A stretch of DNA of 64,000 nucleotides from positions 620,001 through 684,000 of the forward strand of contig OZ025654.1 in NCBI GenBank assembly GCA_964019335.1. The letters are read 5' to 3'. The notes below the pieces were generated by a model, which worked only from the letters and a program-made list of their open reading frames with translations, had not been told where the DNA came from and made no database searches. Each line of letters opens with the position of its first letter. The first letter of the stretch is position 1. Source of the DNA: Diplonema japonicum. Taxonomy: Eukaryota > Protista > Euglenozoa: Diplonemea. Position numbers and translations under genes: made by a program. Of the stretch, positions 101 through 44,871 are shown piece by piece.

Positions 101-238
101 TCATTCCCGTTTTCTTTATCAGATAAAAAAGAAAGAGGCAGAGTCATTTCAAGCTCTTAAGTAGAATAGTAAAAGCAGAAAGTCCAATCGTCGTGCACAG
201 ACAGAAAACAAAAGCAAAAGATGCAAAAATAAAAAAAA

Positions 239-280
239 GAGACATTTAAGGGTACCTGCGGTATGTGGCAGGACGCCTGA
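239..280 (-). mobile_element. Extremely 5'-truncated (42 bp) copy of the LINE 3' end
   Basis: Identical over 42 nt to 13338-13379 (gagacatttaagggtacctgcggtatgtggcaggacgcctga); followed on the minus strand by a T tract. Confidence 0.9.
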
Positions 281-3800: not shown

Positions 3801-5381
3801 GTGTGCCAGGTGATTGAGTAGGAGGGCGTCTGTTTTAGTTACCGTATTCAAAAATATGTTCTACAGGAATAATGCCGAAATCTTTCTTTTTGCCTTCAAA
3901 GTGCAGAAATTAATTCCGGTGAGTATATTTGAAAAATAGCCTCCCCCCCAGGGCTACATTGTCGGCGTACGGCCGTACGTACGCGTATTTCGAACGTACG
4001 CCGTACGCACTTTTTTAGATTTGTTGCGTCGCGTACGTATTTTTTGCGTACGGCATTCATTTTGGAACTTCAACAAAAGCCTAAGGCAATATTCACGGGC
4101 ATGTGTCTCTTGCGGACCTATTGGCTGAGGCTTTTGGGTCAGGCCTGCGGTGTAGGGAGCTCGGTCGTTCAAGGTGAAGCCCAAAGATCGGCCAAGGCTG
4201 ATTCTCTTATTATAATTCAGATCAAACTCTACTTCAACAAACGTAGTTTCACCTGCACGCAGTTTGTGAGGGACTACTGTGTGACAGAACTGGCGTTAGA
4301 AAACCTGCAGGGCGCCCGATCCTGATGACGAAGAGAACGTCTGATAGAGACGAATCGGGTGTAAAAGTATTTGCATGAAGCCTGCCGCCGGCATAGCTGC
4401 CAGTTTTCGCACATTTTCGCATCTTCATGTCTGACTGAGCCCAAATTCGAGTTTGGCTCTAAAAAATAATCCATTTTTTTCCCTTTTTTTCTTTGGAACT
4501 GAAATTAACTTTCGTGTTGAGTCAAAAAAAGAAAGGAAAAAGGGAAAGACATACGTCGACATCCCTGCGATGACCTGCAGGTCTGAAGGACAGGCGTCGT
4601 CCGGGTTGCACGTCGCCCAATTAACGTCGCCTGACGGGTAGTTGTTTTTCAGGTTATCGCACGCGTTGCTACCCACGCAAGCTATTCCACAAGACCCTGA
4701 TGATAGCATGCTGGGACACTGAGGTTTGGCATTTTTGCACGAATCGGCCCCCTGACACTCCATAGAGCAGTCAGAGGCTGGGTACGAGGCACAGTCGAGT
4801 TGCGTACCTTCGCAAGACTTGTCAGTCCGGCAAACAACAGAAGCTTGGCCCGATCCCGTCAGGATGACCTCGGTGTTGCGACATGCTTTTTCAGAAACGC
4901 AGTCTACGTTGCAGTCGGAGGTAGCGGGGCAGTTGACGGTACTATCCTTACACACTTCTTTGTTGGCAGCGTCGTTGCACACGAGGTTCAAGGAACCTCC
5001 GTTGCCCTTTTGGAAGATTTTGATATTCTTGCATGATTTTTTGCCTGTGCAGTTGATGGTGCAGCTGCCTTGCTCGGGACAATATACTTGCGTTTTTTCG
5101 CAGGAATTCTCTGCAGTGCAATCCAAGGTGCAGTCGCCGGTGACGGGGCATGTCACAACAGCTTCTTTGCACGAGGTGAGGGCGTTGCACTCTATGTTGC
5201 ACGGCTGTGCAGCATCACAGGATACAGAACATGATTTGCAAGATGTACTAGTTGAGCAAGTTAGTGTCTCTGGCATCATGGAGCTCAGCGTTGCAGAGTT
5301 GCTTGTGCACCCGTTTAAGCTCTCGCATGGTCCACACATTGCTACAAGCAACAGCCACCATGGCACTGCTCGTGCATGCAT
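862..5381 (-). CDS. Two-exon surface protein (exons 5381-4555 and 3829-862): signal peptide, Cys-rich repeats, Pro/Thr/Ala/Asp mucin stalk, multi-pass TM C-terminal region
   Basis: ATG 5381 (MHARAVPWWLLLVAMC). Donor AC|GTATGT at 4554 and acceptor CTAAAACAG|A at 3830 join in frame (MST-RPPTQSP) into the 862..3180 ORF frame. Many hydrophobic helices in the C-terminal part; architecture resembles DGF-1-like euglenozoan surface proteins (inference). Confidence 0.85.
3290..3795 (-). repeat. 15-bp coding tandem repeat (APDTT/APDTP)n
   Basis: Repeated tctggtgctgtagtg variants. Confidence 0.95.
3830..4554 (-). other. GT-AG intron, 725 nt
   Basis: GTATGT donor, ...GTAACTAAAACAG acceptor; removal restores the reading frame. 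Confidence 0.85.
3949..4052. mobile_element. Possible MITE left end with CGTACG subrepeats inside the intron
   Basis: C-run followed by CAGGGCTAC, like the other MITE starts; multiple cgtacg copies; no matching right TIR found. Confidence 0.4.
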
Positions 5382-5771
5382 ATTCCTGTAGGTTCTTTTT
5401 TTTTTTTCGGAAGGGCAAAAGAAAGAAGAAAGGAAAACAAGGAAAGAAATAATATGACACACGAAAAAAAAAAAAAGAAAATATAATGAGAATAGAAAAA
5501 AGAAAAAAAAAAGAACAAAAAAAAAAGTAAGTGTACATCCCTCACATCTCCATTTAAAGTTTCTGAACAAAAGCGGGGGGGGGGGGGGGGGGGGGATGGG
5601 AGCGAGAGAGAGAGAGAAAAGGAAAAAAAACCCCCCCAGCGCAAATACTTGTACTTTTTTTTATTTATTTTCTTTATTTTCTTCACTCTCTTCAAAAGAG
5701 AACGAGGAATCCTCTTGGCGTTGATTGTGTATGTGGGTTACGGGGGTTTGACGACCCGAAGCGTTATTGTT

Positions 5772-5799
5772 TTCAGACAAGTCAAAGACTCGTTCTTGC
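5772..5799 (-). repeat. Dispersed GCAAGAACGAGTC-Tn-GACTTG hairpin signature, copy 1
   Basis: Near-identical to 11926-11955 and 37918-37944; preceded by a pyrimidine tract. Confidence 0.8.
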
Positions 5800-6235
5800 A
5801 AAAGGGGGGGAGAGAGATAATGTGTGCATGACAAAAATAGCGTAAGACACGTGGGTATTCTTTTTTTGCGAAAACAAATCTTTGTCAGTACCTTAAAAAG
5901 AAAAAAGACGAAAGAGAAACAGCGCTCCTCTTTCTTTTTTTTTTTTTGTTATTTCGAGTTACAAATACAACAAACCTGCTCTAAGCCATAATCCATGCAC
6001 ACAAACAAAAAAAAGAGTCGGCCTACTGTGGGGATAAACGGACAAGCTGCTCTACTCTTTCTTTTTGCAAGTTCTTGTTGTAAAAAAAAAAAAAAAAAGG
6101 GAAACAGAAAAATAGAATCTTTTGGGGTGAGAACCGGCGCTGTAGTTTCTTTTTTGGGGGGGAGCGCTTTAAAAAAAAAAAAAGCCGCAAAAAAAAAAAA
6201 GAAAAAAATAGATTGGGTCAAGAAAGAAAAAAACC

Positions 6236-11976: not shown

Positions 11977-13209
11977 TCAAAACGTAAGCAACACCCCGTG
12001 ACAGTTTTTGGATATCATTTTGGGCCCTCCTACCAACCTGCTCATGAGCTTGGAGTGCGTAAACACCAGGATATTCTTCTCCTTTCTGTCCCCGAGCCAA
12101 GATAGTACCGCGGCCACCCTTGACCTGACATCAGCTTCGCTTTCAACAGGTGAGGTACTATCGGTCAATGCCCATGGCACAGCGTTTTGGCACCACTTAC
12201 TACGGCTGAGACGGTGGGGGAAGGGGATCTCTTCAGGGGTGTCAAGGGGGATGTCGCTCCAAGCGTTGATTATTTCACCGAAGATATTAACAATGTTAAC
12301 CTCAGGCTGGGGACCATGCGATTGGAGAACGTGCCCGCACGTCTCCACAGCCCGACGAAGGGGCGAAGTACAAACAAGGTCAAAGTATGACGGGTCGATT
12401 AATGTGCTTAAATGCTTTGCCTGTTGCACCCCTTTTTCCGTTAAAAGAGCATCACGCAGCCCTGTATCGCACCACTTCTGCTCCTTGTCCTTCTTGTCTG
12501 TCTGGTACCTTGACTCGGCATGCCTGACAAGCACGATGTTCTTCCCTTGCAACGACTTCCTGTTGGGAGCGTCACCTTCAAACTTCCTTTCAACAACCTG
12601 GCAGCCGTCTAGCAGTGCGTACAGACTCCTCACTGCCTGGTCTATCTCCCTTGCGCTTGGAACGGGGACTTTGACCTCGCCACGTTTAACATGGTGGGAA
12701 TATTGTTTTGGAAGCCTGTTTTTAACGGTGTTGATTTCGTACTTTAGGCGCTGCTCGTAGGTTAAGGAGTTGATGCCTGTTTTTGATGGAACGACGGGGC
12801 AGCCTGAAGGTGCAGGGATTCCGTTGATGGCCCACCCGCGGTTTTCCAAAACTTTTCTGAACCCCAAGAGCGATCTTGGCAGGTGGAAGTCGGAGGTAAT
12901 CACCGTGATGCTGACGTTCTTTGCAGGGATGCCCATCTCGTCGATGATGGACCCGCAGTAATATGCGTTTTCCAAGGTGGTCCTGGACTGCTCCTCCTTC
13001 ACCACCCCGTGCATTTCAAGCAAGCCGTGCATCACCTCAGCCTCGGTGATCCCAACCTTGGCCACGTCGGACCCCGTGGCGATCACTATACACCCGGCCC
13101 CTTTGTGTTGCACCACCTCCCTGGCAACCTTTACCCTGAACTTCAGGGACGTCGGGACAGTCCCGTCTTCGTGAAGAGACTGCCCTAGAACGATCACGAT
13201 TTCTTGCAT
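11977..13209 (-). CDS. DUF218 (YdcF-like) domain fused to histidine phosphatase (PGAM-like) domain
   Basis: N-term IVIVLG...EAEVM...EEQSRTTLENA...VITSDFHLPRS; C-term LVRHAES, LTEKGVQQA, SPLRRAVET, VFTHS. Confidence 0.85.
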   Translation of the reverse strand: MQEIVIVLGQSLHEDGTVPTSLKFRVKVAREVVQHKGAGCIVIATGSDVAKVGITEAEVMHGLLEMHGVVKEEQSRTTLENAYYCGSIIDEMGIPAKNVSITVITSDFHLPRSLLGFRKVLENRGWAINGIPAPSGCPVVPSKTGINSLTYEQRLKYEINTVKNRLPKQYSHHVKRGEVKVPVPSAREIDQAVRSLYALLDGCQVVERKFEGDAPNRKSLQGKNIVLVRHAESRYQTDKKDKEQKWCDTGLRDALLTEKGVQQAKHLSTLIDPSYFDLVCTSPLRRAVETCGHVLQSHGPQPEVNIVNIFGEIINAWSDIPLDTPEEIPFPHRLSRSKWCQNAVPWALTDSTSPVESEADVRSRVAAVLSWLGDRKEKNILVFTHSKLMSRLVGGPKMISKNCHGVLLTF

Positions 13210-13337
13210 TTTTAAAGTTTTTTTCCACTTTCTTTTCTTTTAAACAAACCTTGAAAAGGAATGTCTTTTGTTTCTTGTCATGCGGGTACAAAACAATAAA
13301 ATAAAAAAAAAAATAAAAAAAAAAAAAAAAAAAAAAA

Positions 13338-15369
13338 GAGACATTTAAGGGTACCTGCGGTATGTGGCAGGACGCCTGAAGAGTCTCAATCTATCTCTTG
13401 ATCGAACCTTTCTGCTGTGGTGTGGCCTTCGGCCCCTCGTTCACCCTCCTCGGTACCTTAGGTATAAAACCCTCAACCGAGTTGGTAAGGACACAATAGT
13501 TGTACAGTTGTTTCTCAAGGATGTGGCGGGTCACCGGGGAGGCGAATACCGGTCTAGAGGAGTAGCCCCTTACGGAGCTGTTGTAGTAACCCAACGTGCG
13601 CAGGGAGTGGACAGAAACTACTGACGCAGCTGGGATGAGGGGCGCTATGCCCTTACTGGTGTGGATGCGTTCTAGTGCCGTTATCACCCGGCCTATTACA
13701 CGCGCGCTCACTTGGATGTCCTCACCCTCTTCACAAGGTGAGAGTCCCACCGTGGCAATGAAGTCTATGGCCAGCTCAAGCCTGGAGACCTGTCCACCTG
13801 TCGTGCCCCAGTGAAGGGCAGAGAGCCATCGGATGACGTGCGGGATGAGCCGTGGGAGGCACTGTTGCCTCAAACCATTGTCGTAGTACCACCCCAGTGA
13901 CCGTGGCTTGAGCAAACTCCCCTTCTCGAAAGGCCTGTTCCACAGGTGAACGCTGAAGTCCATCGTCTTTTTCCGTGCAAAGGTGAGTTGTAAGCTACCA
14001 GTGATCTCCGCCATCATCAGCTGCAACTCGGCAGTGTCCAGCCCGAGTCCCACTGTCGCGATGCCGTGCAGTTGCGTGCACCGGGGCCACTGGTTACGTT
14101 GTGTGCACAGCGCTGCCCGCGTCTCGGAAGCTGTCCTGATGTGCTCGTGCGCCTGACAGTCCCAGAGGGTGTGCTCCAGGAGTCTCGCCGTGTGTTCCGA
14201 AATGTCGAAAGTAGCGTCGCAGCCCATGCATTTCGTCCGCCCCCCGACCGTGTCGTTGATAATCTTGGGGTGGAACGGGAAAACAGCCCCAGTTATCACT
14301 TGCAGGACCCTTCGTGCTTTGGGAGGGTTGCGGTTCGCCAGGTGCAGGTGTAGCCCGTTGGTTGCCACTTCGTCGATGTCGCCCGTCCCCTGAAAGGAGG
14401 GTCTGCTCTCCACGAGGTTCGCTCGCAGGTGGACCTTCAGGAGCTTCCTGACCTCATGCTTCAGTGCCCCAGGCTCTAGGGGGACCCATTGCCGCGCGAA
14501 ATGCGCCCAGCTGGACCCTAGTTCCTCCAGCAGCTCGTGGGTCTGTCCGAGTATCCCGCGCGGGGCGAGGGGGTTTCCGTTCCGGGCGGCCTCCTTGTAG
14601 CCGTCTCTGCACGCCCTGACGAGTGAACTGGACTCACCGTCGCTCCTCATCATCCGCGCAAACGTTGTGATCCTGCGGTATGCGGCTGCTGAGTACGGGT
14701 CCAGCCTGTGTCCTTTGAAAGCCACCCCGAGGAGGGCGCCTGACGAGCGTGTTGGGTTGTGTGGGCCCCATATGCAAGAGGTAATCTTCTTCCTGAGGGA
14801 GTCCAAGAGCGAGTCCGTGGGTGGTGTGTAGAGCACTCCGTAGAGCGCCGCAGGTAGGATGCAGTCTTCTATCAGTTGGGCCTTACGCGTTCTCGTGATT
14901 TGGGTCACTGTGAGCCTGTCGACAGCATCCAGCGCCGTGGCGATCCTTGTGTTCTTCGTCCTGGTGGGCTGCAGGCACACCGTACACCCCAACATAGTTA
15001 CGCTTTTCACCGTATCGAATAAGGTGCCCCTCATCGCCAGCCTGCTTCTGTACCCCTTCTTGGTGCTAAAGGCCTTAGTTTTCCCCGGGTGTACCGACAT
15101 GTTCGTCAAGCGGCAGAGCTCGTCCAGCAAGAGTATGGAACTCTGGACCGCCTTCTCCGAGATCCTAGAGAAGAGGTATAGGTCGTCCGCGTAGGAGATG
15201 GGTAGGACTTCAGGGAATGTGGTGACGCATCGCCTGGTGTAGGCAGCGAGGATGGCGTTGATGAAGACGGGTGAGATAGGGCAGCCCTGGAGGATTCCGT
15301 TTGTGGTGCGAAACACTTCCCCTACCCCCGCCTGGAAGCGCAAACGCCGGTCGAGGTTGGCGTACATGG
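13338..15369 (-). mobile_element. 5'-truncated non-LTR retrotransposon (RT C-half plus Cys/His C-terminal domain), uninterrupted ORF to stop at 13391
   Basis: GILQGCPISP, YADD, CMGC...HTLWDC; homologous to 33556-37820; 3' UTR hairpin; oligo(T) at 13307-13337; candidate TSD ataaaataaaa at 13296-13306 and 15370-15380. Confidence 0.92.
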
Positions 15370-15384
15370 ATAAAATAAAATAAA

Positions 15385-15521
15385 CACAGCAGCCCAGTCC
15401 GGGCTGCGGTTGTGTAACTTTACACAACGCAGAGCAGAAGTCGGAGATGCGCTGCATTCTCCGTCGACCTCAGGACGCGGAAGCTCTCTCGCAGGTAGCG
15501 GAAAGCACGGAAGAACACTGT
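15385..15521. other. GC-rich structured island between TAAAA repeats
   Basis: Three stems: gcagccc/gggctgc, gttgtgta/tacacaac, cggagatgc/gcattctccg; flanked by aaataaaataaa on both sides. Confidence 0.45.
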
Positions 15522-22064: not shown

Positions 22065-22595
22065 TTTTTGTATTTATTTTTATTTTATTTTTCTTATTTT
22101 TTATTTTGTAATGTTAAAAGAAAACTCGGCACCTTACAGCGTGAACAACAAAATAAAGTATTTAGCGAGGGTGGGGTAAATATATAAGAGGGGGGGGGGG
22201 GGGGGGAAGATAAAGAAGGCAAAGTACGAGCAGTGTAAATAGTCGCTGGTATGTATAAATGAAATGTGGGCTTTTTTTTTTTTTTAAACCATGGTTTTTC
22301 TTTTTAAAAGGAGAGGTAAAAAAAAAAAATAAAAGGGAAGGAAGGTTTTTATTTTTTATTTTTATTTTTTTATTTTGTTGTCATATAACCATGTGCTGTC
22401 TTCGTACCAAACTTGAGATGAAGCTTCTGGCTCCAAAAGAGATGAAAAAAAGTATAAAAGCAAAGTATTAAAGGCAGTCCAGCTTCCACATTTGGTTCGA
22501 GGGGGGGAGAGGGAACACAGTGACACAAGGTAATATAAGAATTATCTTTTGAGAAAGGGAGCAAGGGGGGAAAAATTCTTTTTTTTTTCCAGTTC

Positions 22596-22631
<36 letters not shown>

Positions 22632-22751
22632 CCCGTTTAAAAAAAAAAGGAGCAAGATGTTTTCATAATTCTCTTCGTTTCTTGCTGGGTCGTGCTGCTA
22701 TAAAAGTGCACAACCTGCACGCAATGCCGCAAATAAGAAAAAGGTCAAAAT

Positions 22752-22831
22752 AACTAGTTTGGCGCTTTTCAATCTGTTTACGCGCACGAGCGGGATTCTC
22801 CTCTAATAAAATAGCTCATTACGCTGTTATC
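22752..22831 (-). repeat. Short dispersed repeat, copy 1 (partner 23752-23825)
   Basis: Shared blocks tagtttgg, gcgcacgagcg, taaaa, ctcattacgc in the same order. Confidence 0.7.
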
Positions 22832-22878
22832 AAACAGAAAACTGGTGTTTCTGCGGGCTTTTGAACCCCCCCCCCCCC

Positions 22879-22960
22879 CAGGCATGGCGAAACGAAATGT
22901 TTTCCGCACGTTTTCGCACTTTCAGGGCTGATCCAAAACCTTCGCAACGAAAGCTGTTTT
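22879..22960. mobile_element. Probable MITE left-end remnant
   Basis: ttttgaa, C-run, then CAGGCATGG with CGAAA/TTTCG repeats; no right TIR. Confidence 0.35.
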
Positions 22961-23507
22961 TTAACTTACTTTTTTTTTTTTTCTTCCGCTCGTTCTTTTC
23001 CGGGGCTTCAAAGCACACCAAAGATCGAGTTTTTTTTTTTTTTTTTTTTTTGTTGTCTCTTTTTTCATTTCACGCACTCAACTTGGCTTGCAGTCATAAT
23101 ACGCCAAGGTAGGCCGGCTTTTTCCCTCCCAACAATAAGACTGCGAAGAGGTCATAAGGGTGACAGTAGATACCTATTTTATTTTTATTCGAGGTTCATT
23201 CTCAGGGTAAAAATGTGCCCTCCCGTTAAATAAGGAAGGAGGCCAACACCTCTGCCATACCCTTCGAATGGGTCCCAAAATAATATCAGTATTAAAATCA
23301 GTGCCAGGACATCTGACTTTCTATAGACAAATAGTTATTATTCCCCACCCCCTAATAGCCGATCTCATAGCGGTGAGTGAGAATGGGGAGGAGGGGGTGT
23401 ATTTTTTTTTTTTTTTGGTAGAATTTTCAACCCAGCATCCCCTCGGGGGGTTATGTGGAGTTGCATCGAAAAAAAACAAAATCTTCATGGTTCTGTATTC
23501 TTTTCTT

Positions 23508-23539
<32 letters not shown>

Positions 23540-23751
23540 TTTTTTTTCTCCTTTTCTTCTTTTTTTTATCATTTGATCTTTGCTTCACCTCACACCCCTC
23601 CCTGCTTTTGTGGCAACAGCTAAAAAAGAAGGAGGACGGCGAATTTGGTGTTTTTTTTTTTTTTTTTTTTTTTTTTCCCTTCTTTTCTTTTTTTTTTTTT
23701 TCTTCCTCCATAGCAATTACACAATTGAAGAAAAAGAAAAAAAGAAAAAAA

Positions 23752-33317: not shown

Positions 33318-33555
33318 CTTTTTTCTTTTTTTTTTTGTATCCCCCGCCTCCCTTTTTTTATTTGTAATTGCTTCACTAATAAAATTTTAAAGAAAATAAA
33401 GAAAATAAAGAAAATAAAGAGAAGAAGACAAGTTCGGGGTTATATAATTAGAATTCTTCTTTTCATTTTTCTTTTTTTTTCTTCTTTTCTCTTTAATACT
33501 GTTTTGCACCAGAAGTTTTGAAACGAAATATTTAGGGGGGGGGCGGAAAAAAAAA

Positions 33556-36500
33556 GATGTCTTTGAAGGGAACCTGCAGTATGTGACAGGATCGCCTAAC
33601 GACAATCAACTCATCTAGTGTTTGATCCCTTCTGTCGTGGTAGTGCCTTAGGCCCGTCGTAGTATCTCATCAGCAGCTTGGGCGTGAAACCAACTAGCGA
33701 GTTGTTGAGGATGCAATGCGTGCGCATTTGTTCCTCTAGGATCGAGTGGGTGACCTTCGGGGATGCGAAGATCGGACGAGTGGAGTAGCCAGTGACGGCA
33801 TGGCTGTGGAGCCCTAGGGTGCGTAGTGAGTGTACTGACTTCATAGTTTCTGCCGGAATCAGATGATTCCCCGTCCCTTTTAGATGGATCCTTTCTAAGA
33901 CGCTGAGAATCCTGCCGAGCTTTCTCGCCCAGCATGCTATGTCTTCCCCACCCATGTGGAGCCTTTCCGTTGCAATGAGGTCGACTGCTAGTTCCGCCTT
34001 CGAAACTTGCCGCCTTCCTCGCCCCATTTTAGGGCGTTCAGCCAGTTGAGGACAAATGGGATTAGGCCTGGGAAGTATTTCTTCTGCAGCCCATGTTCGT
34101 GGTACCAGGGGAGAGGCTTCGGGGTTAAGAGGTTCCCCGGTCGGAATGGTCTATTCCAGAAATGCTGGTTCGTGTACCTGACCTGCTTGTCGGCGTGCAG
34201 GTTCTCGAGCTTGCCTGCCACTTCTGCTAGCATCAGGTGGAGCTCCTTGACTCTCAATAGGCTGATGTCCAAGTCCGAGGTAATGATGCCGTGTACGCGG
34301 GTGCAGGTTGGCCAGTTAGTGTGTTCTTGCACTAGCCATTCGCGGTCGGCGTTGGCCGTTCTAAAACCGGCGTGTGCCGGGCAGTGCCAAATTGTATGCA
34401 GCAGGAGGTTGCTGGTCCCGCTTCTAATGTCGAAGGGTGCGTCACACCCAAGGCATTTCGTTCGCGTGCCATCCATGTCGCCGTAGGCTCTAGGGTGCAG
34501 TGGAAGGATGGCGCCAGTAACGGCACAAAGGATTCTCCTCGCTTTCTGCGGGTTGGTGATCGCCACCTCGTTGTGTAGGACGTTCGTCTTCATCTCGTCC
34601 ACTCCTGTCTCGATTCCTTTGAAAGTGTCCCGCTCTTCGGCGAGCTCGCCCCGCAGTTTTTCTTTCAACCGCGCTCTGACCTCGTGTTTCAGGTGTGGCA
34701 TGCCCCGTGGCAACTCTTTAATAAAGTCCTTCCATCTCGTCCCGATGTCCCGTAGCCATATTTCCGCATTACCAAATGGCCCCTTCGAAAGCGACGGCGT
34801 TCCATCTCGCTCCTTTGCGTACTTGTAAGTTTCCCAGCCCGACTCGAATAGGGACTTGTTCGACTGTCGTGTGCACAGGCGACCTAGGGTCGAAATGGCT
34901 TTATAGACCACCGAAGAGTAAGGGTCTAGGGTGTGTCCTTTGTAGGCAATCCCTAGCAGCGCACTGGCGGAACGCTTCGGGTTGCGTGCGCCCCAGATGC
35001 ATGACGTGATCTGCTTCTTCAATTTCACCAGCCAAGAGTCTGGGATTGGGTCGAATAGGACGCCGTAGAAGGCGGACGGTAGGATGTTCTCTGCGATGAT
35101 CTGTACCTTGCGGTTGTGGTAAAGTCTCGTTGCTGCGAGGCGCTCAATTTCCGCAAGTGCCTTGCGGGCTCTCGTGTTCTCTCTTCTACAAGGCTGGAAG
35201 TAGACCAGTACCCCCAGGATCTGCAGTTGCAGGACGTGTCGAAGGTCTCCCCGTGTAGCTGTACGTTGCCGCAGTACTTGGGTTTCGTTCCAAACGACTT
35301 AGTTTTCTTCGGGTGGATAGCCATCCCTGTGAGCTTGCAGAGGGTGCCAAGCAGGTTAACGGAGCGTTGCACCGCGGCCTCCGAGGTAGCCGACGTGAGG
35401 TTTAGGTCGTCTGCATACGACACAGGATGGGCGTTTCTAGGGTTCGCCGTGCATATCTTGGTGAATATAGCGAGGATCGCGTTGATGAAGACCGGTGATA
35501 TTGGACAACCCTGGAGAATCCCATTCGTGGTTCTGAACGGTGCGCCCACCCCCATGGGGAAACGTAACCGACGGATTAGGTCCGAGTAGATGGATTTTAT
35601 CGGTCTCAGGATAAGTTGGCTGAGGCCTAAACGCTCCACTAAATCGAACGTAAGCGCATGGGGGATCGAGTCGAAGCACTTTTTGAAGTCAACCGAGAGG
35701 CCATAGAGGTGCTTACCTGATACTTTCGCCGTCTCTACACTAGTGCAGACTCGGGCGAGGAGGTCGTCCGTGCTGTGTTTCGGCCTGAAACCGAACTGGA
35801 GAGGGGTGATCCACGCCTCTTGCCACTCGAGGATCGCGGGTAGTCTAGCGCCTGCCCAGAGTCGGTAGAACGCACTCGATACCGTGATTGGGCGGTGTTC
35901 CAGCGGTTCTTCGGACTCACCTTTCGGGATCATAGTTACAAGCGCCGTGAGGACTGCCTTGGGCCATCGTCCCCCTTCCTCTATCCATTCGTACAGAAAG
36001 ACGAAACCCTCCAGCAGTGCGTCCGGTAAATGTGCGAGTTCACACAGCCTCCAACCGTCGATCCCTGCGCACTCCTGCTTCTCCTTCTTTTTCAGGACTA
36101 CCCGTAGATCGTCCAGAGTGAGTGAGAGGTCTACCATCGGGTGGTGGGAGATCTGCGTCCCAAACGCCTCTTCAAAAGAGTCGTAGCGCGGTTCGGGGCG
36201 TTCTTCGTATTTGCGAAAGATGTGGCGCCACGCCGACCTGAAAGCTAGGTCGATCTCTTCAATTGAGGTCGAGATGGCACCGTTGGTTTTTGCTGCTACC
36301 AGCTCTCTCTCGGGCCTATCTGCTACGAACTGCATGATCGCGCTCCGATTCACCGAGAAGCCTGAATTTAGCTCCCTCCGTGCTTTCACACTGCGCTGGA
36401 TCTTCGAGGCAATGTCCATGTCCCGTTGTAATGCTGTCACCTTCCTTTTCACAAGGTCTGCCTCCTTGGAGATGTTGCCGTCGGAAAAAGTCTCAGGGTG

Positions 36501-37820
36501 AACCTTTAAGACATTGATAGCTTTCGCCTTCATCTTGTCCCACCCTTTACGTAGGTCATAGGGCAAGGCTGGGTCTTTCAACAGCTGAACTCTCCGTAAA
36601 ATGGCGGATGCGCTTTGTCGGATTTTCTCGAGGGTTAAGTATTTCTTGGATACAGCTCCAAAACTGTTCTCCGTGGATGGGGCTGCGGTCCTTCGCAAGC
36701 TGGGTGAGTTTACTTCGCCTCTGCCTGAGAATATCGAGTTTCCCAATTGTGCTGTCCCCCTCAAGAGATGCTTTTCACAAGCTGTAGAGAGCGCTAAGAA
36801 AGCGGCGTCTAGATCCCCGGTGTCCTTCAGGGCCCTCAATGTTGGGAGAATATCACTGTGCGGTGTACGGTCTCGGGAGTCCTGGAGGGGGACGATCATC
36901 CTGGGCATATGGTATTGGAGCGAGGGCTCGTGGAATTTTGGGATATCAATCGAGATTTTAAGTGCGTGGTGGGAGGGACACCAATGTCGATGGTCTGGCA
37001 GTCTCTCAGAGCCATTGACGCCGTTGCGTTCATCAGGATGTAGTCTGGCCTGGATTTCGCCGTTGCCGTGACGAAGGAGGGAGGGGTCTGTGTACCACGT
37101 AGGCGTGAGACCTTTTCCGAGGCGTCCGTCCAATGCTGTGCAAGGGCGTGTGAAAGCACCGGGGAGTCCTGAATGGTAGTATTAAAATCTCCCGTTACGA
37201 TGACCGGAACGTCCCCCAGTTGCGTAGTTTTCCGTAGTGTGTCATCTATCAGTGCTTCCCTGTTTCTTTTGGCGTGACTACTGCCGTCGTTAACCTGGCA
37301 GTAGAGGGTGATGACGTGTAACCAATCCCGTTTCCCCAATGCGACTCTTACGTGAACTCTGCGTGTGTTGGTGCCGTGGTCTTCGAAAAGAGAAGTCTCC
37401 TTCTTCGCAGTCAGCCGCTTGTTCACTATAATTCCCACTCCTCCTCTTTGGGCGACCGAGGGGGACTCTGCATCCTTGGATATCTTTCCCTGTTGCGGGG
37501 GTCCCCAGAAGAGACGGTGTTCTTTCAGGAAAGCGTCACGTTTTGTTTCTTCGTTCACCATCCACTGACCAGCTTGCGTTAGGGCTGTCTCCTGGAGGCA
37601 GATCAGGTCAAATGATTGTAGTTTGATCCTATTCAGATGGTTCGGGAGGTTCGTGACGTTCACTGAGATAAGAGTGAGCTCCTTCTTGTTCTCCTCTTCG
37701 GGTCCAGGATTCGGATGGATGTCACCGTGGGTCATGAGCGGTTTTCTCGCTTCGCGTGCGATAGATCGTCTCGACCTCTTCAAAATGAGGAAATGTGCCC
37801 GTGGAAGGTGGATCACTGTT
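33556..37820 (-). mobile_element. Near full-length APE-RT non-LTR retrotransposon with 2A-like peptide; three frameshifts
   Basis: LMTHGDIHPNPGP; APE motifs ISVNV, ICLQET, GGVG, TGDFN, RPDY, SHH; RT motifs RPITV, QFGF, DFKKCFDSI, QGCPISP, YADD; CLGC...HTIWHC; frameshifts near 36975, 35230, 34010; 3' hairpin then T9. The 5' boundary is uncertain (37820 or 37944). Confidence 0.93.
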
Positions 37821-37944: not shown

Positions 37945-38341
37945 GAAAGAACAAAGAAAAAGAAGAAAATTAATTAAAACACGGGAGCCTGGGAGGATAG
38001 GAGACAGAAAGAAAAAAAGGGAAAACAAAATAGAATTTCTAATCTACTATCTACTCAATTATGACTTGGACAGAGACACGCAAAAAGGGTGGAGAGACCC
38101 ATTGCCATCTGCCAGGTACATTTCTCTTTCTGTCGGATTGTAAGAAAGCTGCTAGTATGGGGGTTACGGGATAAAGAAAAAAAGTAAAATAATAAAAGAA
38201 GGAAGTCTTAACGAATTTAAAAATACTCTTTTTGGGTTTTCTTGTTTTTTTTTTCTTTCTTTTCTTTCTTCGTGTTGTTTGTTTTGTTGCCCTTTTTCTT
38301 TTTTTTTTTATATAAAATCTTTTTTTATCCCCACAAAAAAA

Positions 38342-38694
38342 GTTGTCTCGATTTTAGTGGTGCCATGCAGTATGTGACACAGCGGCCACCCTTGTGAAAC
38401 TTCGCCCCGAAGCCTCCCAAGTCCCCTCTAAAGTAAAAGTGGAGAGGTAAAGAAAGCTTGGAAATTGAAATAGGGAGAGGGGCCACAGAAGCAATTAAAC
38501 ACCAACTGGAGAGTTGTGGGAGGCTTGCTTCACTGGCACGATGCCGCGGGAGGCTACTTGTAGGGTGGGCTCTCCACCCCCGTCCAGGTTTCCCCACGTG
38601 TACGGCTTTAGAACGAGAGTTTCCCTTTCGCTTGTGTTTCTCCAAACCACAATTACCAGGAACCACCACAGGGAGGCTGGAAACATTGGTCCCC
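38342..38694 (-). mobile_element. Ribozyme-headed non-autonomous retroposon (353 bp) with LINE-like 3' end
   Basis: 5' end at ribozyme G1 after T8A; 14 nt tgcagtatgtgaca (38366-38379) identical to the LINE 3' hairpin core (33575-33588); ends in T7. Confidence 0.8.
38619..38694 (-). ncRNA. HDV-like self-cleaving ribozyme (76 nt)
   Basis: GGGGACC-AAU-GUUUCCA-GCC-UCCCUGU-GGU-GGUUCCU-GG-UAA-[UUGUGGUUU-GGAG-AAACACAA]-GC-GAAAG-GGAAAC: P1 with G1-U wobble, P2, P3, L3, P1.1, P4 and catalytic C in the canonical HDV genomic order. Confidence 0.9.
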
Positions 38695-40683: not shown

Positions 40684-40830
40684 TACTTTTTTTCTTTCCT
40701 CCTTTTTTTTGTTTTTGTTTTTTGTTTGACGTTGGGGGGGGGGGGGGGGATGAATATAAAATGGGGAAAGGGAAACAAAAAAAAAAGAGAATAAAAAAAG
40801 AAAATAAGAGGGTATCACAACAAAGGAGCC

Positions 40831-40861
<31 letters not shown>

Positions 40862-41052
40862 GTGTGTGTCTACCGGCCTGCACAATAATCAGCCGATTCT
40901 TTTTTTTTTGTGTCTGGAAAAAAAAAAAAAAAAAAAAAAAAACTTCTTTTTCCCTCTTTTTTTTCATAAAACGTGGCAAGAACACTTTTCTTTTTTATTC
41001 ATTTTTTTTTTTTTTTTTTTTTTTTTCACACTTTTTTTTTTTTTTTTTTTTT

Positions 41053-42207
41053 TTAATAACCCGACAACGAATTGCACCTGGAGTGCACAATACCGACACC
41101 CAGTTCATCATATTCATTCTTGGAGATCCACTGGTCCTGAAAGGTACCAAGCGAAGCAAGGATCGCACCACCCATCCAAACTGTGTATTTTCGAATATTC
41201 CTGCCCTCCGCCGACGAGTCCGACACCACTTTGATACTCTCTCTGGCGTTGGGGGGAATCTTCGGGTGACGGGCAAGCTCGGCAGTGAGACGCGGCTCCA
41301 TATTTTTGAAGAGCGTCGTACCTCCAGACAGAACGATGTTACTCAGCAAAGTCTTTCTGCAGTCGATGGGGCAGTCCCAAATGGATCTCTGTATAACGTC
41401 TGGAAGCGATTCTGCTTCAGAATCCATCAATTTTGGGTCAAATAAAGCTTCGGGGCATGCAAACTTGGACATTCCAAGGTTGAGCTCACGACCGTCAGGA
41501 AGAGTGTACTTTTCGTCAAAGGAGTCTGGATCCTCCTCCCATTTTTCAATATCTGTTTCAAAATCGTCGGATAGAAAGGTCAGCGACTCCTTGATGTCCT
41601 TTGCCCACTCCCTGTGCTTTGATGTGGTTAGTTTTACATCGTCGTTGATATCAGACAATAAACGCATCATCCATTCTGTTAAATCTCTTCCTGCGATTTC
41701 CAATCTTTTCACCGCAGACGGCATGACTCTTCCATCATATACAGGGACAGTGTGGGTTACACCGTCTCCGGAATCTATCACGATACCGTCGTTGCGGCCG
41801 GAGGCGTAGAGTGCGAGAACGGCTTGGATTTGAACGAAGAGTGCGGGGACCTCGAACTCTTCGAAGAGGATTTCAAGCATTTTTTCGCGGTTTTTCTTGG
41901 GGTTGAGCGGTGCCTCGGTCACGAGGACTGCTTGTTTTTCGGGTTCGGTATCGAGTTCTTTGTAAGCGTGCCGCCAGACCTTGGACATTCCATCCCAGTC
42001 GTTGACGATGCCGTGCTCTACCGGATATCGCAGTCTGTAGCCTTTTGCGTCGACAGCTTCTTGTCCTACTAGTACCCCATCACCTCTTATCTCCTTCCCT
42101 ACGCATGACGGGAAGACCGCAGTCGGTTCTTCCGCGCCAGCAAACCCTGCCTTCATCATGCCTGTGCCGTTGTCTAGGACAACGGCGTCTTCGTCCATCC
42201 ATGCCAT
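41053..42207 (-). CDS. Actin-related protein
   Basis: VVLDNGTGMMKAGFAG, YPVEHGIV, TEAPLNPKKNRE, DSGDGVTH, IVLSGGTT, RKYTVWMGGAILASL. Confidence 0.95.
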   Translation of the reverse strand: MAWMDEDAVVLDNGTGMMKAGFAGAEEPTAVFPSCVGKEIRGDGVLVGQEAVDAKGYRLRYPVEHGIVNDWDGMSKVWRHAYKELDTEPEKQAVLVTEAPLNPKKNREKMLEILFEEFEVPALFVQIQAVLALYASGRNDGIVIDSGDGVTHTVPVYDGRVMPSAVKRLEIAGRDLTEWMMRLLSDINDDVKLTTSKHREWAKDIKESLTFLSDDFETDIEKWEEDPDSFDEKYTLPDGRELNLGMSKFACPEALFDPKLMDSEAESLPDVIQRSIWDCPIDCRKTLLSNIVLSGGTTLFKNMEPRLTAELARHPKIPPNARESIKVVSDSSAEGRNIRKYTVWMGGAILASLGTFQDQWISKNEYDELGVGIVHSRCNSLSGY

Positions 42208-42616
42208 GCCCCCCCCCCCCCCCCCCCTGTCCTCAACCTTTTTTTTTTTTTTTTTGAGAATGGGATTTTTTTTTTGGGGGGGAAAAATAACTGAGAAAAA
42301 AAAGAAATGGGGGGGGGGAAAAAAAGGAAAGAAAAAAAAAGAGAGTAGCCCCCCGCCCCGCACTGTGTAAATTGGAAGGGAGGAATTTTAAAAAAAAAAG
42401 GTTTTTTTTTGTTATGTTCTAAGTATACCCGTGTAAAGGTAAAAAGGAATATGATGGGGGCCCCATGAGGTAAAGAAAAAAGAAAGGGAAAAAAAAAAAA
42501 AAAGCATGGGGACATCATTTCTTTTTTGTTTTTGTTTTTTGTTTTGTTGTTCTTTGGTTTGTTTTTTTTGTTTTGTTTTGTTTTGTTTTTTTGTTGCTGA
42601 GCCAAGAAAGAGAGAC

Positions 42617-42873
42617 TTAATGCTTCCCTGCAAGGTCACCACCACCTGCCAGCCCGCCTCCCAGGGAAATCTGTATTTTTTTTCCCCCTCCCTTTTCTTT
42701 TTTTTTTTTTTTTGGTCTACCTTATGTTCGATGTTGGAGTTGAGAGATTTAATTCCAGCTTCGAGCTGGTGGTTTTCATCTGCCAAGGCTTTCTTACGGC
42801 TTTCTAAAGGTCCGAAAAACTGCCCTAAGGGGGCAAGAATCGTGTCGGGGAGCTTCACTGCCTGCTTGCCCAT
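42617..42873 (-). CDS. Small two-exon protein (68 aa), unknown function; exons 42873-42721 and 42670-42617
   Basis: ATG after A-tract; 50-nt intron GTAGAC-A-tract-ATACAG; spliced product ends ...IEHKISLGGGLAGGGDLAGKH*. Confidence 0.6.
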
Positions 42874-43470
42874 TTTTATTTATTCCTTCTCTGGTCTTAG
42901 AATACTACTGCGGGTAGGGTTTCAAGGAAAGGCATACCAAAAAAAAAAACGGAAAGAGAAGGAAAACAGAGATAGAGAAATACAAGAAAAACAATGAGAC
43001 CCCAAAAGGAAGCAATTGGGTGTGATTCATAAAACGTGGCCTCTAGCCAGTGGTGCGCTTGGTGCATCTGACTCAGAAAAAGAAAAAGAGTGGGTGAAAG
43101 AAAAAAAAGAAAAGAACGGAAAGCAGAAAGAATCATAAAAGCTATCTTGGCGGAATAATGTGAGCTGCAAGGAAGTCTTTTGTGTTTCTTGCAGAGAAAA
43201 AAAAAGGAGAACAAATGGCGTGCTAGTGGACGACCGAAAAGGAAGAAGAAAAAAAAAAAAAATACAGCTTGTCATTTTTTTTTCCTTTTCTTTTTTTTTT
43301 GGGGGGGTTTTTTTTTCGCTCGAGATAAAGTGAAACTAAATTCCTTTGCTCGGCACACACACAAAAAAAAAAAAAAAGGATAACAAGCCAGTTATAAAAA
43401 GCAATATCGTGAACGGAAGCTCGCGAAAGAGGGATAAAAAAAAAGGGGGGAACTTGGACCAAAGTCTGCC

Positions 43471-43680
43471 TCAGGAAGCATTTTTAATCGGCAACGTTGC
43501 ACCCGGCACCACCTTCAACGCCTCATGCATCAGATACAGGTCCTGCCGCACAGGAGGGGGCACCATCATGGCAGGATCAGGATGCTGGTGTTTCTTGCCC
43601 ATTTCAATGATCACATTCATCTCATATATCATAACCCCTACTGTGGCGAGGAATGCGACTCCTGCGGTGCCGGAAGACAT
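43471..43680 (-). CDS. Small single-TM protein (69 aa), unknown function
   Basis: GC-rich coding-like island between homopolymer tracts; MSSGTAGVAFLATVGVMIY... Confidence 0.55.
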   Translation of the reverse strand: MSSGTAGVAFLATVGVMIYEMNVIIEMGKKHQHPDPAMMVPPPVRQDLYLMHEALKVVPGATLPIKNAS

Positions 43681-43876
43681 CTTCTTTTTTTTCTCCCCCC
43701 CCTTTTCCCCCCCTCCTTTTTTTTTTTTTTTTTTACGATAATTAATGGGGGGGAAAAAAATGGTGGGGTTTTTTTTTTCTTCCCAGAACACTTTGGAGGA
43801 AACGTTGGGGGGGGGGGGGGGGGTATGTGGGCTTACAAATAGGGGAAAACAGGGGGGGGGGGGGGAAGGGAAACAT

Positions 43877-44045
43877 CTACGGCCTCGGAGAAATGATGCT
43901 GCGCATAGACTTGACAGAATCCATGACAGCCAACCACTGCTGCAAGTTAATTGCTTGTTCGCCGCCGCTTGCTGCAGTAATGTATGACTCAATCCTTGAA
44001 CGCATGTCCTCAGCGTTCTCGCCCAGCTGACGGGCGACCTCCACT

Positions 44046-44084
<39 letters not shown>

Positions 44085-44443
44085 ACAATTGTAATGCATA
44101 CCCATATTGTCGACGGTGATTGTGTCAGACTTGTCAAGATCGAAGAGCTTGAAAGCCCTTTTAGCCTCTTCCTCACTATCCTTTGCCGCGGTGCGGTCCA
44201 CCATCATTTTCTCGAACTCATCATAGCTGTTTTTTTTTCTTTTTTTTTTTTTCTTTAAAGATACTTAATCTTTGCGTCCCCATCCTTGTCGATCGCCGTC
44301 ATCATATCCAGAACTTCGGAGTCCTCCAGCTGCCACCCCAACGACAGCATTGCCAGCTTCATCTCCTGCTGATCGATCTCACCGCTTCCGTCTGAGTCGA
44401 AAAGACGAAAGGACTCCTTAATGTGCTCCATGGAAAGTGTCAT
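43877..44443 (-). CDS. Centrin/calmodulin-like EF-hand protein; three exons (44443-44265, 44226-44102, 44043-43877)
   Basis: EF hands FDSDGSGEIDQQE, IDKDGDAKINYDE (formed on splicing), FDLDKSDTITVDN; introns 44227-44264 and 44044-44101 keep the frame. Confidence 0.9.
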
Positions 44444-44871
44444 TTTTTCTTCTCTTTTTTCTCTCACCTTTTTTTCTTCAATTTTTTATTTTTTTCTTTC
44501 TATTTTGTTGTCACTTTCTTCTTCTTTCTTTTTCTTTTTTGAATTCTCGCTTTTTTTTTTTTCGCTTGTTCTGACCTGCTCTGCATCTTTGCTATTTCCG
44601 AGAGCTGGCCTTATCTGAGCGGCTGCTGCAATTTCCCATTGACGAAAAAAAACTTTTTCTCTTACACCCTTTAACTGGAATCACCCCCACCCACATCAAC
44701 CATATTGACGTTGCCGTGAGGCGGGTAAGCAGGGGTAAACGGACAAGCTGCCTCTTTTTTTGCAGTAACGGAAACAGAAAAAAGACTGAATTCGAAACAA
44801 AACGGAAGAAGGAAAAAAAAAGGTAGAAACCTCTCAGAAAGAAAAGAACTGGAAAAGACGGTCAGTCCATG

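Follow-up and report, generated by a model that had tools for sequence, protein, structure and literature searches.

Every well-studied LINE with a homopolymer tail uses poly(A), and uridines at the end of an RNA are a host weapon against L1. In human cells, RNA ends carrying 7U or 26U abolish L1 retrotransposition (PMC6191937). Human L1 combines an AP-type endonuclease and a reverse transcriptase (RT) in one ORF2, and its copies are often 5' truncated. It inserts into homopolymer tracts, where the nicked strand can pair with the homopolymer tail of the RNA, and its young copies have long and pure tails that decay with age. All of these features have a counterpart, in the case of the endonuclease a probable one, in the LINE family from Diplonema japonicum described here. 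L1, however, has a poly(A) tail and an oligo(dT) primer, whereas the diplonemid family has a T tail and, as proposed below, an oligo(dA) primer. The family further differs from L1 by a T-tract also at the 5' junction, by a conserved 3' stem-loop, and by a near-absolute orientation with the genes.

The L1Tc/ingi elements share with the family a euglenozoan host with polycistronic, trans-spliced genes, an AP endonuclease, probable in the case of the family, together with an RT, an NPGP 2A-like peptide before the enzymatic domains, and a strong excess of sense orientation within gene clusters (PMC5814959). For L1Tc, a sense bias of ten to one in polycistronic units has already been reported (PMC5814959), as have a poly(A) end and defined target site duplications (TSDs) (PMC5814959). 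The 5' end of L1Tc consists of the Pr77 promoter and an HDV-like ribozyme, whereas the family begins with the final 16 nt of the spliced leader. L1Tc also has an RNase H domain, whereas a Pfam search of the diplonemid element gave no match to RNase H (PF00075) up to an E value of 0.1.

The nearest published precedent found is the plant Au-like SINEs, which are mobilised by RTE elements and end in a 3' hairpin followed by a T stretch of 3–5 nt (PMC6007223). Their TSDs start with T near the T stretch, and this has been read as pairing between tail and target (PMC6007223). A retroposon 3' end made of a hairpin and then a T stretch is thus common to both groups. Au-like SINEs are, however, non-autonomous and their partner LINEs end in (GTT)n, whereas the family appears to be an autonomous LINE, has a long T-run of 13–45 T, and is found inside a T-tract. 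LINE-like genes are listed in the genome paper of Diplonema papillatum, which does not describe their ends (PMC10161547). Full-text searches gave no description of T-tailed LINEs or of a mirror image of the L1 insertion scheme. Stringent-type LINEs (for example the eel UnaL2 type) have a 3' stem-loop and short repeat tails. Their short 3' UTR, which amounts to roughly one conserved stem-loop before the tail, is similar to that of the family, and in both cases very short derivatives keep that end; the tail is a short repeat in the former and a T homopolymer in the latter. To our knowledge, a T-tract target has not been reported for stringent-type LINEs.

The LINE copy in the window and its family

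The window, meaning the whole stretch of 64,000 nt that was analysed, contains a 5'-truncated LINE copy on its minus strand (Table 1). A natural full-length copy at locus L037 of the same genome was used as the reference for the family. Compared with it, the window copy (15371..13338) corresponds to element positions 4177–6210 of 6,210, with 99.85% identity and 3 differences (blastn). Since there are only 3 differences in 2,034 nt, the window copy is very young. An ORF with the YADD motif of an RT was listed on the minus strand at 13391–15457, and the copy matches RVT_1 (Pfam PF00078) with E = 2e-10. What remains of the RT is its C-terminal half, which is followed by the Cys/His domain, and the ORF2 remnant is 99.7% identical to the reference across 659 aa (tblastn). 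The candidate 5' TSD overlaps the first 1–2 nt of the element, and the junction is ambiguous there. We regard this feature as probably a dead-on-arrival, 5'-truncated copy of an active and autonomous LINE of the AP-endonuclease type.

Table 1. Positions in the window of the LINE copies, their ends and adjoining features.
Feature	Position	Strand	Basis
Mini copy, same family, 42 nt, inner hairpin only	239..280	-	100% match to element 6169-6210
T8 run after mini copy	231..238	-	sequence
LINE copy, 5'-truncated, 2,034 nt	13338..15371	-	blastn vs full-length copy in L037
ORF2 remnant, residues ~799-1457, open to TAG stop	13391..15369	-	ORF list; tblastn
Terminal 50-nt stem-loop, ending at the element's last nucleotide	13338..13387	-	fold
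T tail (T23, A, T7) between element end and candidate 3' TSD	13307..13337	-	sequence
Candidate 3' TSD copy, sense TTTTATTTTAT	13296..13306	-	low complexity
Candidate 5' TSD copy	15370..15380	-	sequence, blastn junction
Candidate AG acceptor at 13251/13250, with 13249 as putative first nucleotide of the exon	13249..13251	-	contig, public run X13
Sister LINE family, degenerate copy	33556..37813	-	tblastn 45-54% aa identity in ORF2; hairpin
T9 tail of sister-family copy	33547..33555	-	sequence
Short element end, only hairpin core in common	38342..38396	-	hairpin comparison

The full element is ~6,210 nt long and consists, in this order, of a T-run, a part of the spliced leader, ORF1, a UGA, ORF2 and a 3' UTR of 53 nt. 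At the 5' end lies a T-run of variable length, and next comes CTGTACTTTATTG, which represents the 3' part of the spliced leader (its last 16 nt). ORF1, of 538 codons, gave no match in a Pfam search. An in-frame UGA separates it from ORF2, whose 1,457 codons encode a predicted 2A-like peptide, a probable AP-type endonuclease, an RT and a Cys/His-rich tail. The putative 2A-like peptide, GDIHPNPGP, follows the UGA and has H in place of the E of the -DxExNPGP- motif. Full-length ORF2 matches PF00078 with E = 5e-22. N-terminal to the RT, PF03372 (AP endonuclease) is matched with E = 3e-5 and 24.3 bits, just under the cut-off of 24.5. This is probably a true match; precomputed PF03372 matches are present in most full-length relatives. 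The closest relatives are proteins from diplonemid transcriptomes and many proteins of D. papillatum, with 33–47% identity, and the nearest solved structures, those of L1 ORF2p and R2, are equally far from the RT of the element (E ~1e-13).

Twenty copies with long flanks form a 5'-truncation series with a common 3' end, their lengths being 295, 336, 395, 477, 529, 643, 1002 ... 6,215 nt. The anchoring of this series at the T end implies that cDNA synthesis begins there, and that the coding-sense template carries the T-run at its 3' end. A confusion of strands, in which the Ts would be the A tail of an element on the opposite strand seen at the 5' end, is excluded by the strand of the ORFs and by the same series.

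A preliminary description of the window had reported four related 3' ends on the gene strand, each directly followed by Ts and lacking an A tail. The strand and the tails are borne out by the sequence: on the minus strand, the ends at 239, 13338, 33556 and 38342 are followed by T8; T23, A, T11; T9; and T7, respectively. The relatedness of the four ends stands for three of them. The mini copy at 239 belongs to the same family and has a candidate TSD, TTTTTA, on both flanks; copies of 41–42 nt preceded by T5 number 63 in the genome. The copy at 33556 belongs to a sister family, in which ORF2 residues 61–1457 are found in pieces and frameshifted, with the same type of hairpin at the end. For the end at 38342, with its T7 at 38335–38341, the relationship is weak, as the part in common with the family is the 16-nt hairpin core alone, and neither an RT upstream nor a second copy was found in the DNA searched. 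A distant LINE family (28% aa identity, different 3' UTR) likewise ends in T10–T14, and T tails are therefore not peculiar to one family.

Outside the window, all fetched copies (30/30) end in ...CTTAAATGTCTC, followed by 10–42 T and then by unrelated unique DNA. Counting the exact 22 nt of the 3' end over the 62.5-Mb assembly gave 408 ends; in 235 of these, 12 or more T come directly after the end, and in no case is the base other than T at both +1 and +4, so that the T tail seen in the window holds genome-wide. The reversed control pattern had no match in the assembly. In copies free of differences the tail is pure T and its length has a mode of 25–27, while diverged copies have shorter and interrupted tails. 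Full-length copies that are candidate donors carry T24–T40. No 3' transduction was found among 30 flanks, which fits an RNA with a usable end inside a U stretch. Inside the element itself no run of 5 or more T was found, but the expectation is just 0.9, which does not bear out a depletion of T-runs. A tail interruption common to two copies ('T6 C') was considered as inherited, and this was rejected because the two copies belong to different subfamilies.

Orientation relative to genes

The minus strand of the window carries every large ORF as well as all four 3' ends. The co-orientation with host genes that this had suggested was also found at other loci of the family. All informative insertions (25/25) are co-oriented with the largest non-element ORFs of their flanks, and secondary copies within loci are all on the strand of the primary copy. 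Along contigs, neighbouring copies are on the same strand in 65 of 75 cases (p = 5e-11). Nine of the ten strand switches along contigs are minus-to-plus, with one switch per contig, and this fits chromosomes made of two divergent gene arrays. A lone copy on the opposite strand, C14:455688, was seen among the ~97 matches listed.

The preliminary description proposed that polypyrimidine tracts are targeted, but such targeting does not account for the co-orientation. On the gene-sense strand, runs of at least 10 nt comprise 313 T-runs and 290 A-runs in 173 kb, and the window is alike. As T-runs and A-runs are about equally frequent, the supply of targets is not the cause of the orientation bias, and co-orientation as a by-product of a strand bias in T-tracts is ruled out. 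The near-absolute co-orientation points to a possible coupling to the direction of transcription or replication, or to strong selection.

Selection might act alone, leaving both the co-orientation and the T flanks as mere survivorship, if the element inserted in random orientation and antisense copies were subsequently purged. The roughly ten-to-one sense bias of L1Tc in T. cruzi, which has been discussed in functional terms (PMC5814959), would be in line with such survivorship, as would the existence of the single opposite-strand copy among the ~97 matches listed. The bias is, however, near-absolute also in copies with 0 differences and in copies of 41–42 nt, and the gene strand tolerates A-runs, which an antisense tail would add, no less often than T-runs. 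Selection against antisense copies of even 42 nt seems too weak to produce the bias, and we consider survivorship a rather unlikely explanation.

T-tract targets and the origin of the Ts

The claim that the element targets T-tracts was strengthened by the 5' junctions. In 14 of 21 copies, a run of at least 6 T lies no more than 3 nt from the junction, compared with 4.8% of random flank positions (p = 3e-14). Several new copies also lie inside T tails left by older elements, so that head-to-tail stacks result. The T-run at the 3' side has a median length of 26, compared with 6 at the 5' side, and is the longer of the two in 19 of 21 copies (Wilcoxon p = 2e-4); the longer run is on the 5' side in some copies (L035, L039). 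The 5' runs are mostly 4–11 nt long, with a few above 20, and resemble the ordinary background distribution of run lengths. Since both flanks of the insert end up with a T-tract, the proposal that insertion regenerates the tract fits the sequence.

The 11-bp TSD proposed for the window copy is present at both positions given in Table 1, but it is weak evidence when taken alone, as ~5% of mismatched flank pairs taken from other loci match over the same length with two non-T letters. Across copies, at least two non-T letters after the 3' run match the letters of the 5' junction in 4 of 16 cases, compared with 7.9% of shuffled pairs (p = 0.03), and a test of TSD length against shuffled flank pairs gave p ~0.06. 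Longest matches were no better than in shuffled flank pairs, because a T-run plus one letter is found everywhere. Where the candidate TSDs include non-T letters, these stand on the far side of the long run, as in the window copy (TTTTATTTTAT), the mini copy (TTTTTA), L029 (TTTTTTA[CA]) and L041/L045 (T10-11 C). Neither an empty allele nor an empty site at a paralogous position came to light for the family. The nested insertion at L025 was tried as an empty-site test and set aside, since an insertion of the family into the T tail of a sister-family copy explains it equally well.

It could be speculated that the element only targets T-tracts and brings no Ts of its own. The RNA would then end in ...GUCUC, and the element would enter a pre-existing long, pure T-run a few nucleotides in from its upstream edge, with blunt ends or a very small stagger; the Ts on both sides would all be host DNA. 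Such an insertion would give T at both junctions without any special placement of the second nick. Long pure T-runs that could serve as targets are abundant, numbering 40 of 25 T or more over 173 kb of flanking DNA, and the TSDs are statistically insecure. On the other hand, there would have to be a strict need for ~20–50 T, although runs of 6–15 T are about ten times commoner than runs of about 20–50 T, and the nick would have to be fixed ~6 nt from the upstream edge. The background-like lengths of the 5' runs and the position of the non-T letters of the candidate TSDs, distal to the long run, also argue against it. Furthermore, where the family has inserted in the tails of other families, the Ts sum to 27 and 52, compared with the tails of 9–14 that those families have elsewhere. 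We therefore regard targeting without tailing as unlikely. A tail is favoured, if not overwhelmingly, over pure targeting of long runs, and most of the 3' T-run probably came with the insertion, as the preliminary description had suggested; both the longer 3' run and the distal non-T letters speak for this. In the 42-nt copy of the window, at most 3 Ts can belong to a tail.

A possible mechanism of insertion

The last 50 nt of the element fold into a stem-loop with the outer stem GAGAC...GUCUC and the loop CACAUACC (-21.1 kcal/mol, z = -5.6). The core of this hairpin is invariant across five sequences from at least four families, with changes on both sides at 2 of 8 pairs, and it had no match in a metagenome scan. 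Within a model of target-primed reverse transcription (TPRT), we propose from the sequence that the hairpin may be recognised by the RT of the element.

The reading we find fairly probable is that insertion takes place by TPRT in which an oligo(dA) end, freed by a nick in a T-tract, pairs with oligo(U) at the end of the RNA. The endonuclease would first nick the A-rich strand of the T-tract. The freed oligo(dA) 3' end would then pair with the 3' oligo(U) of the RNA, beside the hairpin recognised by the RT, and prime the cDNA. The other strand would be cut at the downstream end of the T-tract, or at most 1–2 nt from it. The short target duplication would consequently consist of T, the old tract being kept at the 5' junction, while the tail and the duplicated Ts together would make up the longer tract at the 3' junction. 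The U stretch would most simply be encoded by the T tail of the donor copy, with transcription either terminating inside this tail or reading through it, followed by internal priming. A hairpin with a T-tract behind it looks like a terminator, comparable to the one formed by a T-tract in the spliced-leader RNA genes of kinetoplastids (PMC1888695).

As a variant of this model, a terminal uridylyl transferase (TUTase) could append the U tail once the RNA has been transcribed. Euglenozoans possess many TUTases, and the purity of the youngest tails, their clustering at 25–27 nt and the lack of 3' transduction would all agree with uridylation. This variant is nevertheless quite improbable, given that the full-length candidate donors already hold T24–T40 and that the hairpin and T-tract are terminator-like; moreover, uridylation blocks L1 in human cells, though L1 needs A (PMC6191937). 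Chance or a low-complexity assembly artefact, which the A/T-rich region and the low-complexity TSD might suggest, is refuted by the 30 fetched T-tailed copies and the genome-wide counts (408 identical ends with T-runs, compared with 0 control matches), and the family 3' end is also present in public-run contigs from four differently labelled organisms.

Going beyond TPRT from oligo(dA) ends as such, it is conceivable, although we hold it with more doubt than confidence, that this diplonemid LINE lineage has inverted the logic of L1 and become fitted to a polycistronic, trans-splicing genome, with priming by oligo(dA) only and with tracts that are rebuilt. The template RNA would then extend from a spliced-leader head to the hairpin and oligo(U), the latter arising by termination in the T tail of the element or by uridylation. 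If only oligo(dA) ends of the transcribed strand (or of the lagging strand) could prime cDNA synthesis, insertion would be mechanistically forced to be co-directional with the genes. The polypyrimidine tracts rebuilt on both sides by each insertion would spare both the 3'-end formation of the upstream gene and the trans-splicing of the downstream gene.

If the family indeed flourishes with T tails, the pairing of tail and target in TPRT would be a general rule that can be satisfied with the opposite base pair, and a pair of endonuclease and RT with reversed tract specificity would exist. The family would also offer a natural system for how the orientation of a retrotransposon becomes locked to the direction of genes in polycistronic genomes. 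A T-tailed family is furthermore relevant to how the T-tracts used in euglenozoan trans-splicing arise and are replaced.

The gene downstream of the window copy encodes a DUF218/His_Phos protein and has its ATG at 13209. In a contig from public run X13, the last 11 nt of the spliced leader are joined to GTTTGTTTAAAA, the 12 nt after the AG at 13251/13250. This candidate acceptor of the DUF218/His_Phos gene is located 47 nt past the tail and candidate TSD, and 40 nt before the ATG. As the layout of the contig is odd, with a loose end attached at 13204, we treat the acceptor as a lead only; its position is compatible with preserved processing of the downstream gene. The contigs of the four public runs break in homopolymers, and none of them bridges the insertion site. 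Among these contigs, 3' ends of the family far outnumber its 5' parts, and many short copies start at 13379/13380 beside T-runs.

Element organisation and hairpin-only copies

In the natural full-length copy of the family at locus L037, which serves as the reference, ORF1 and ORF2 lie in one frame and are separated by a single UGA codon, and a 2A-like NPGP peptide is encoded approximately 100 codons past this UGA. The family also includes a discrete class of copies of only 41-42 nt that consist of the inner 3' hairpin alone, with one member in the window and 63 places in the D. japonicum genome assembly. These short copies share a common start nucleotide and are preceded by at least five Ts; of the first 28, 18 also have a run of at least 12 Ts on their 3' side. 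Copies of the sister family with an equivalent start position are found at two loci, L026 and L035. The short copies could mark a hot spot of reverse transcriptase fall-off, or they could be a tiny non-autonomous element.

Positions of features in the window and in loci fetched from the genome assembly
Feature	Sequence	Position	Strand
UGA between ORF1 and ORF2 (element 1781-1783)	L037	5127-5129	minus
41-42-nt copy	window	239-280	
T-run series 3' of the element	L024	1795-1890	
Distant LINE family end	L043	6040-6140	
Distant LINE family end	L037	7790-7900	minus
Distant LINE family end	L026	5' flank	
Region of the spliced-leader join	window	13204-13251	
Stretch with long A/T runs	window	22270-23700	
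Stretch with long A/T runs	window	40830-44560	
Long G/C run	window	22190-22207	

Unusual junctions and a distant LINE family

At the 5' junction of the 395-nt copy in locus L050, the head fragment TTTTCTGTACT is fused directly to a point inside the element that lies 395 nt before its 3' end. The copy is internally deleted or template-switched, and has retained part of the spliced-leader head. In locus L024 the element is followed on its 3' side by T13, C, T24, CC, T24, the 8-nt remnant AATGTCTC and T15, an array that looks like the product of several successive insertions, either abortive or consisting of the tail alone, with a repeat unit of roughly 24 Ts.

In a distant LINE family the 3' end reads ...GGGGCTTGTCCTGTACTTTGAG and continues into T10-T14. 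The final nucleotides of this family include CTGTACTTT, a 9-nt sequence that the spliced leader also contains and that here lies at an element's 3' end.

Genomic setting

Among the copy places on contigs C1-C24 of the assembly, nine contigs carry minus-strand family copies at the left and plus-strand copies at the right, with one switch per contig, which suggests that the chromosomes consist of two gene arrays in divergent orientation. At C14:455688 there is a lone copy on the opposite strand, with a minus-strand copy 543 bp away.

Homopolymer runs of A and T are extremely frequent, those of at least 10 nt occurring about once per 290 bp in the flanks of L001-L050, and they show no strand bias relative to genes. 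Many reach 25-35 nt, both in these flanks and in the window. Long runs of G and C are present too, one example being that at window 22190-22207.

Downstream of the window copy, a contig from the public sequencing run X13 joins the 3' end of the spliced leader to the sequence following the AG at 13251/13250, the likely acceptor for trans-splicing of the DUF218/His_Phos gene. The loose end of the same contig is oddly attached at 13204.
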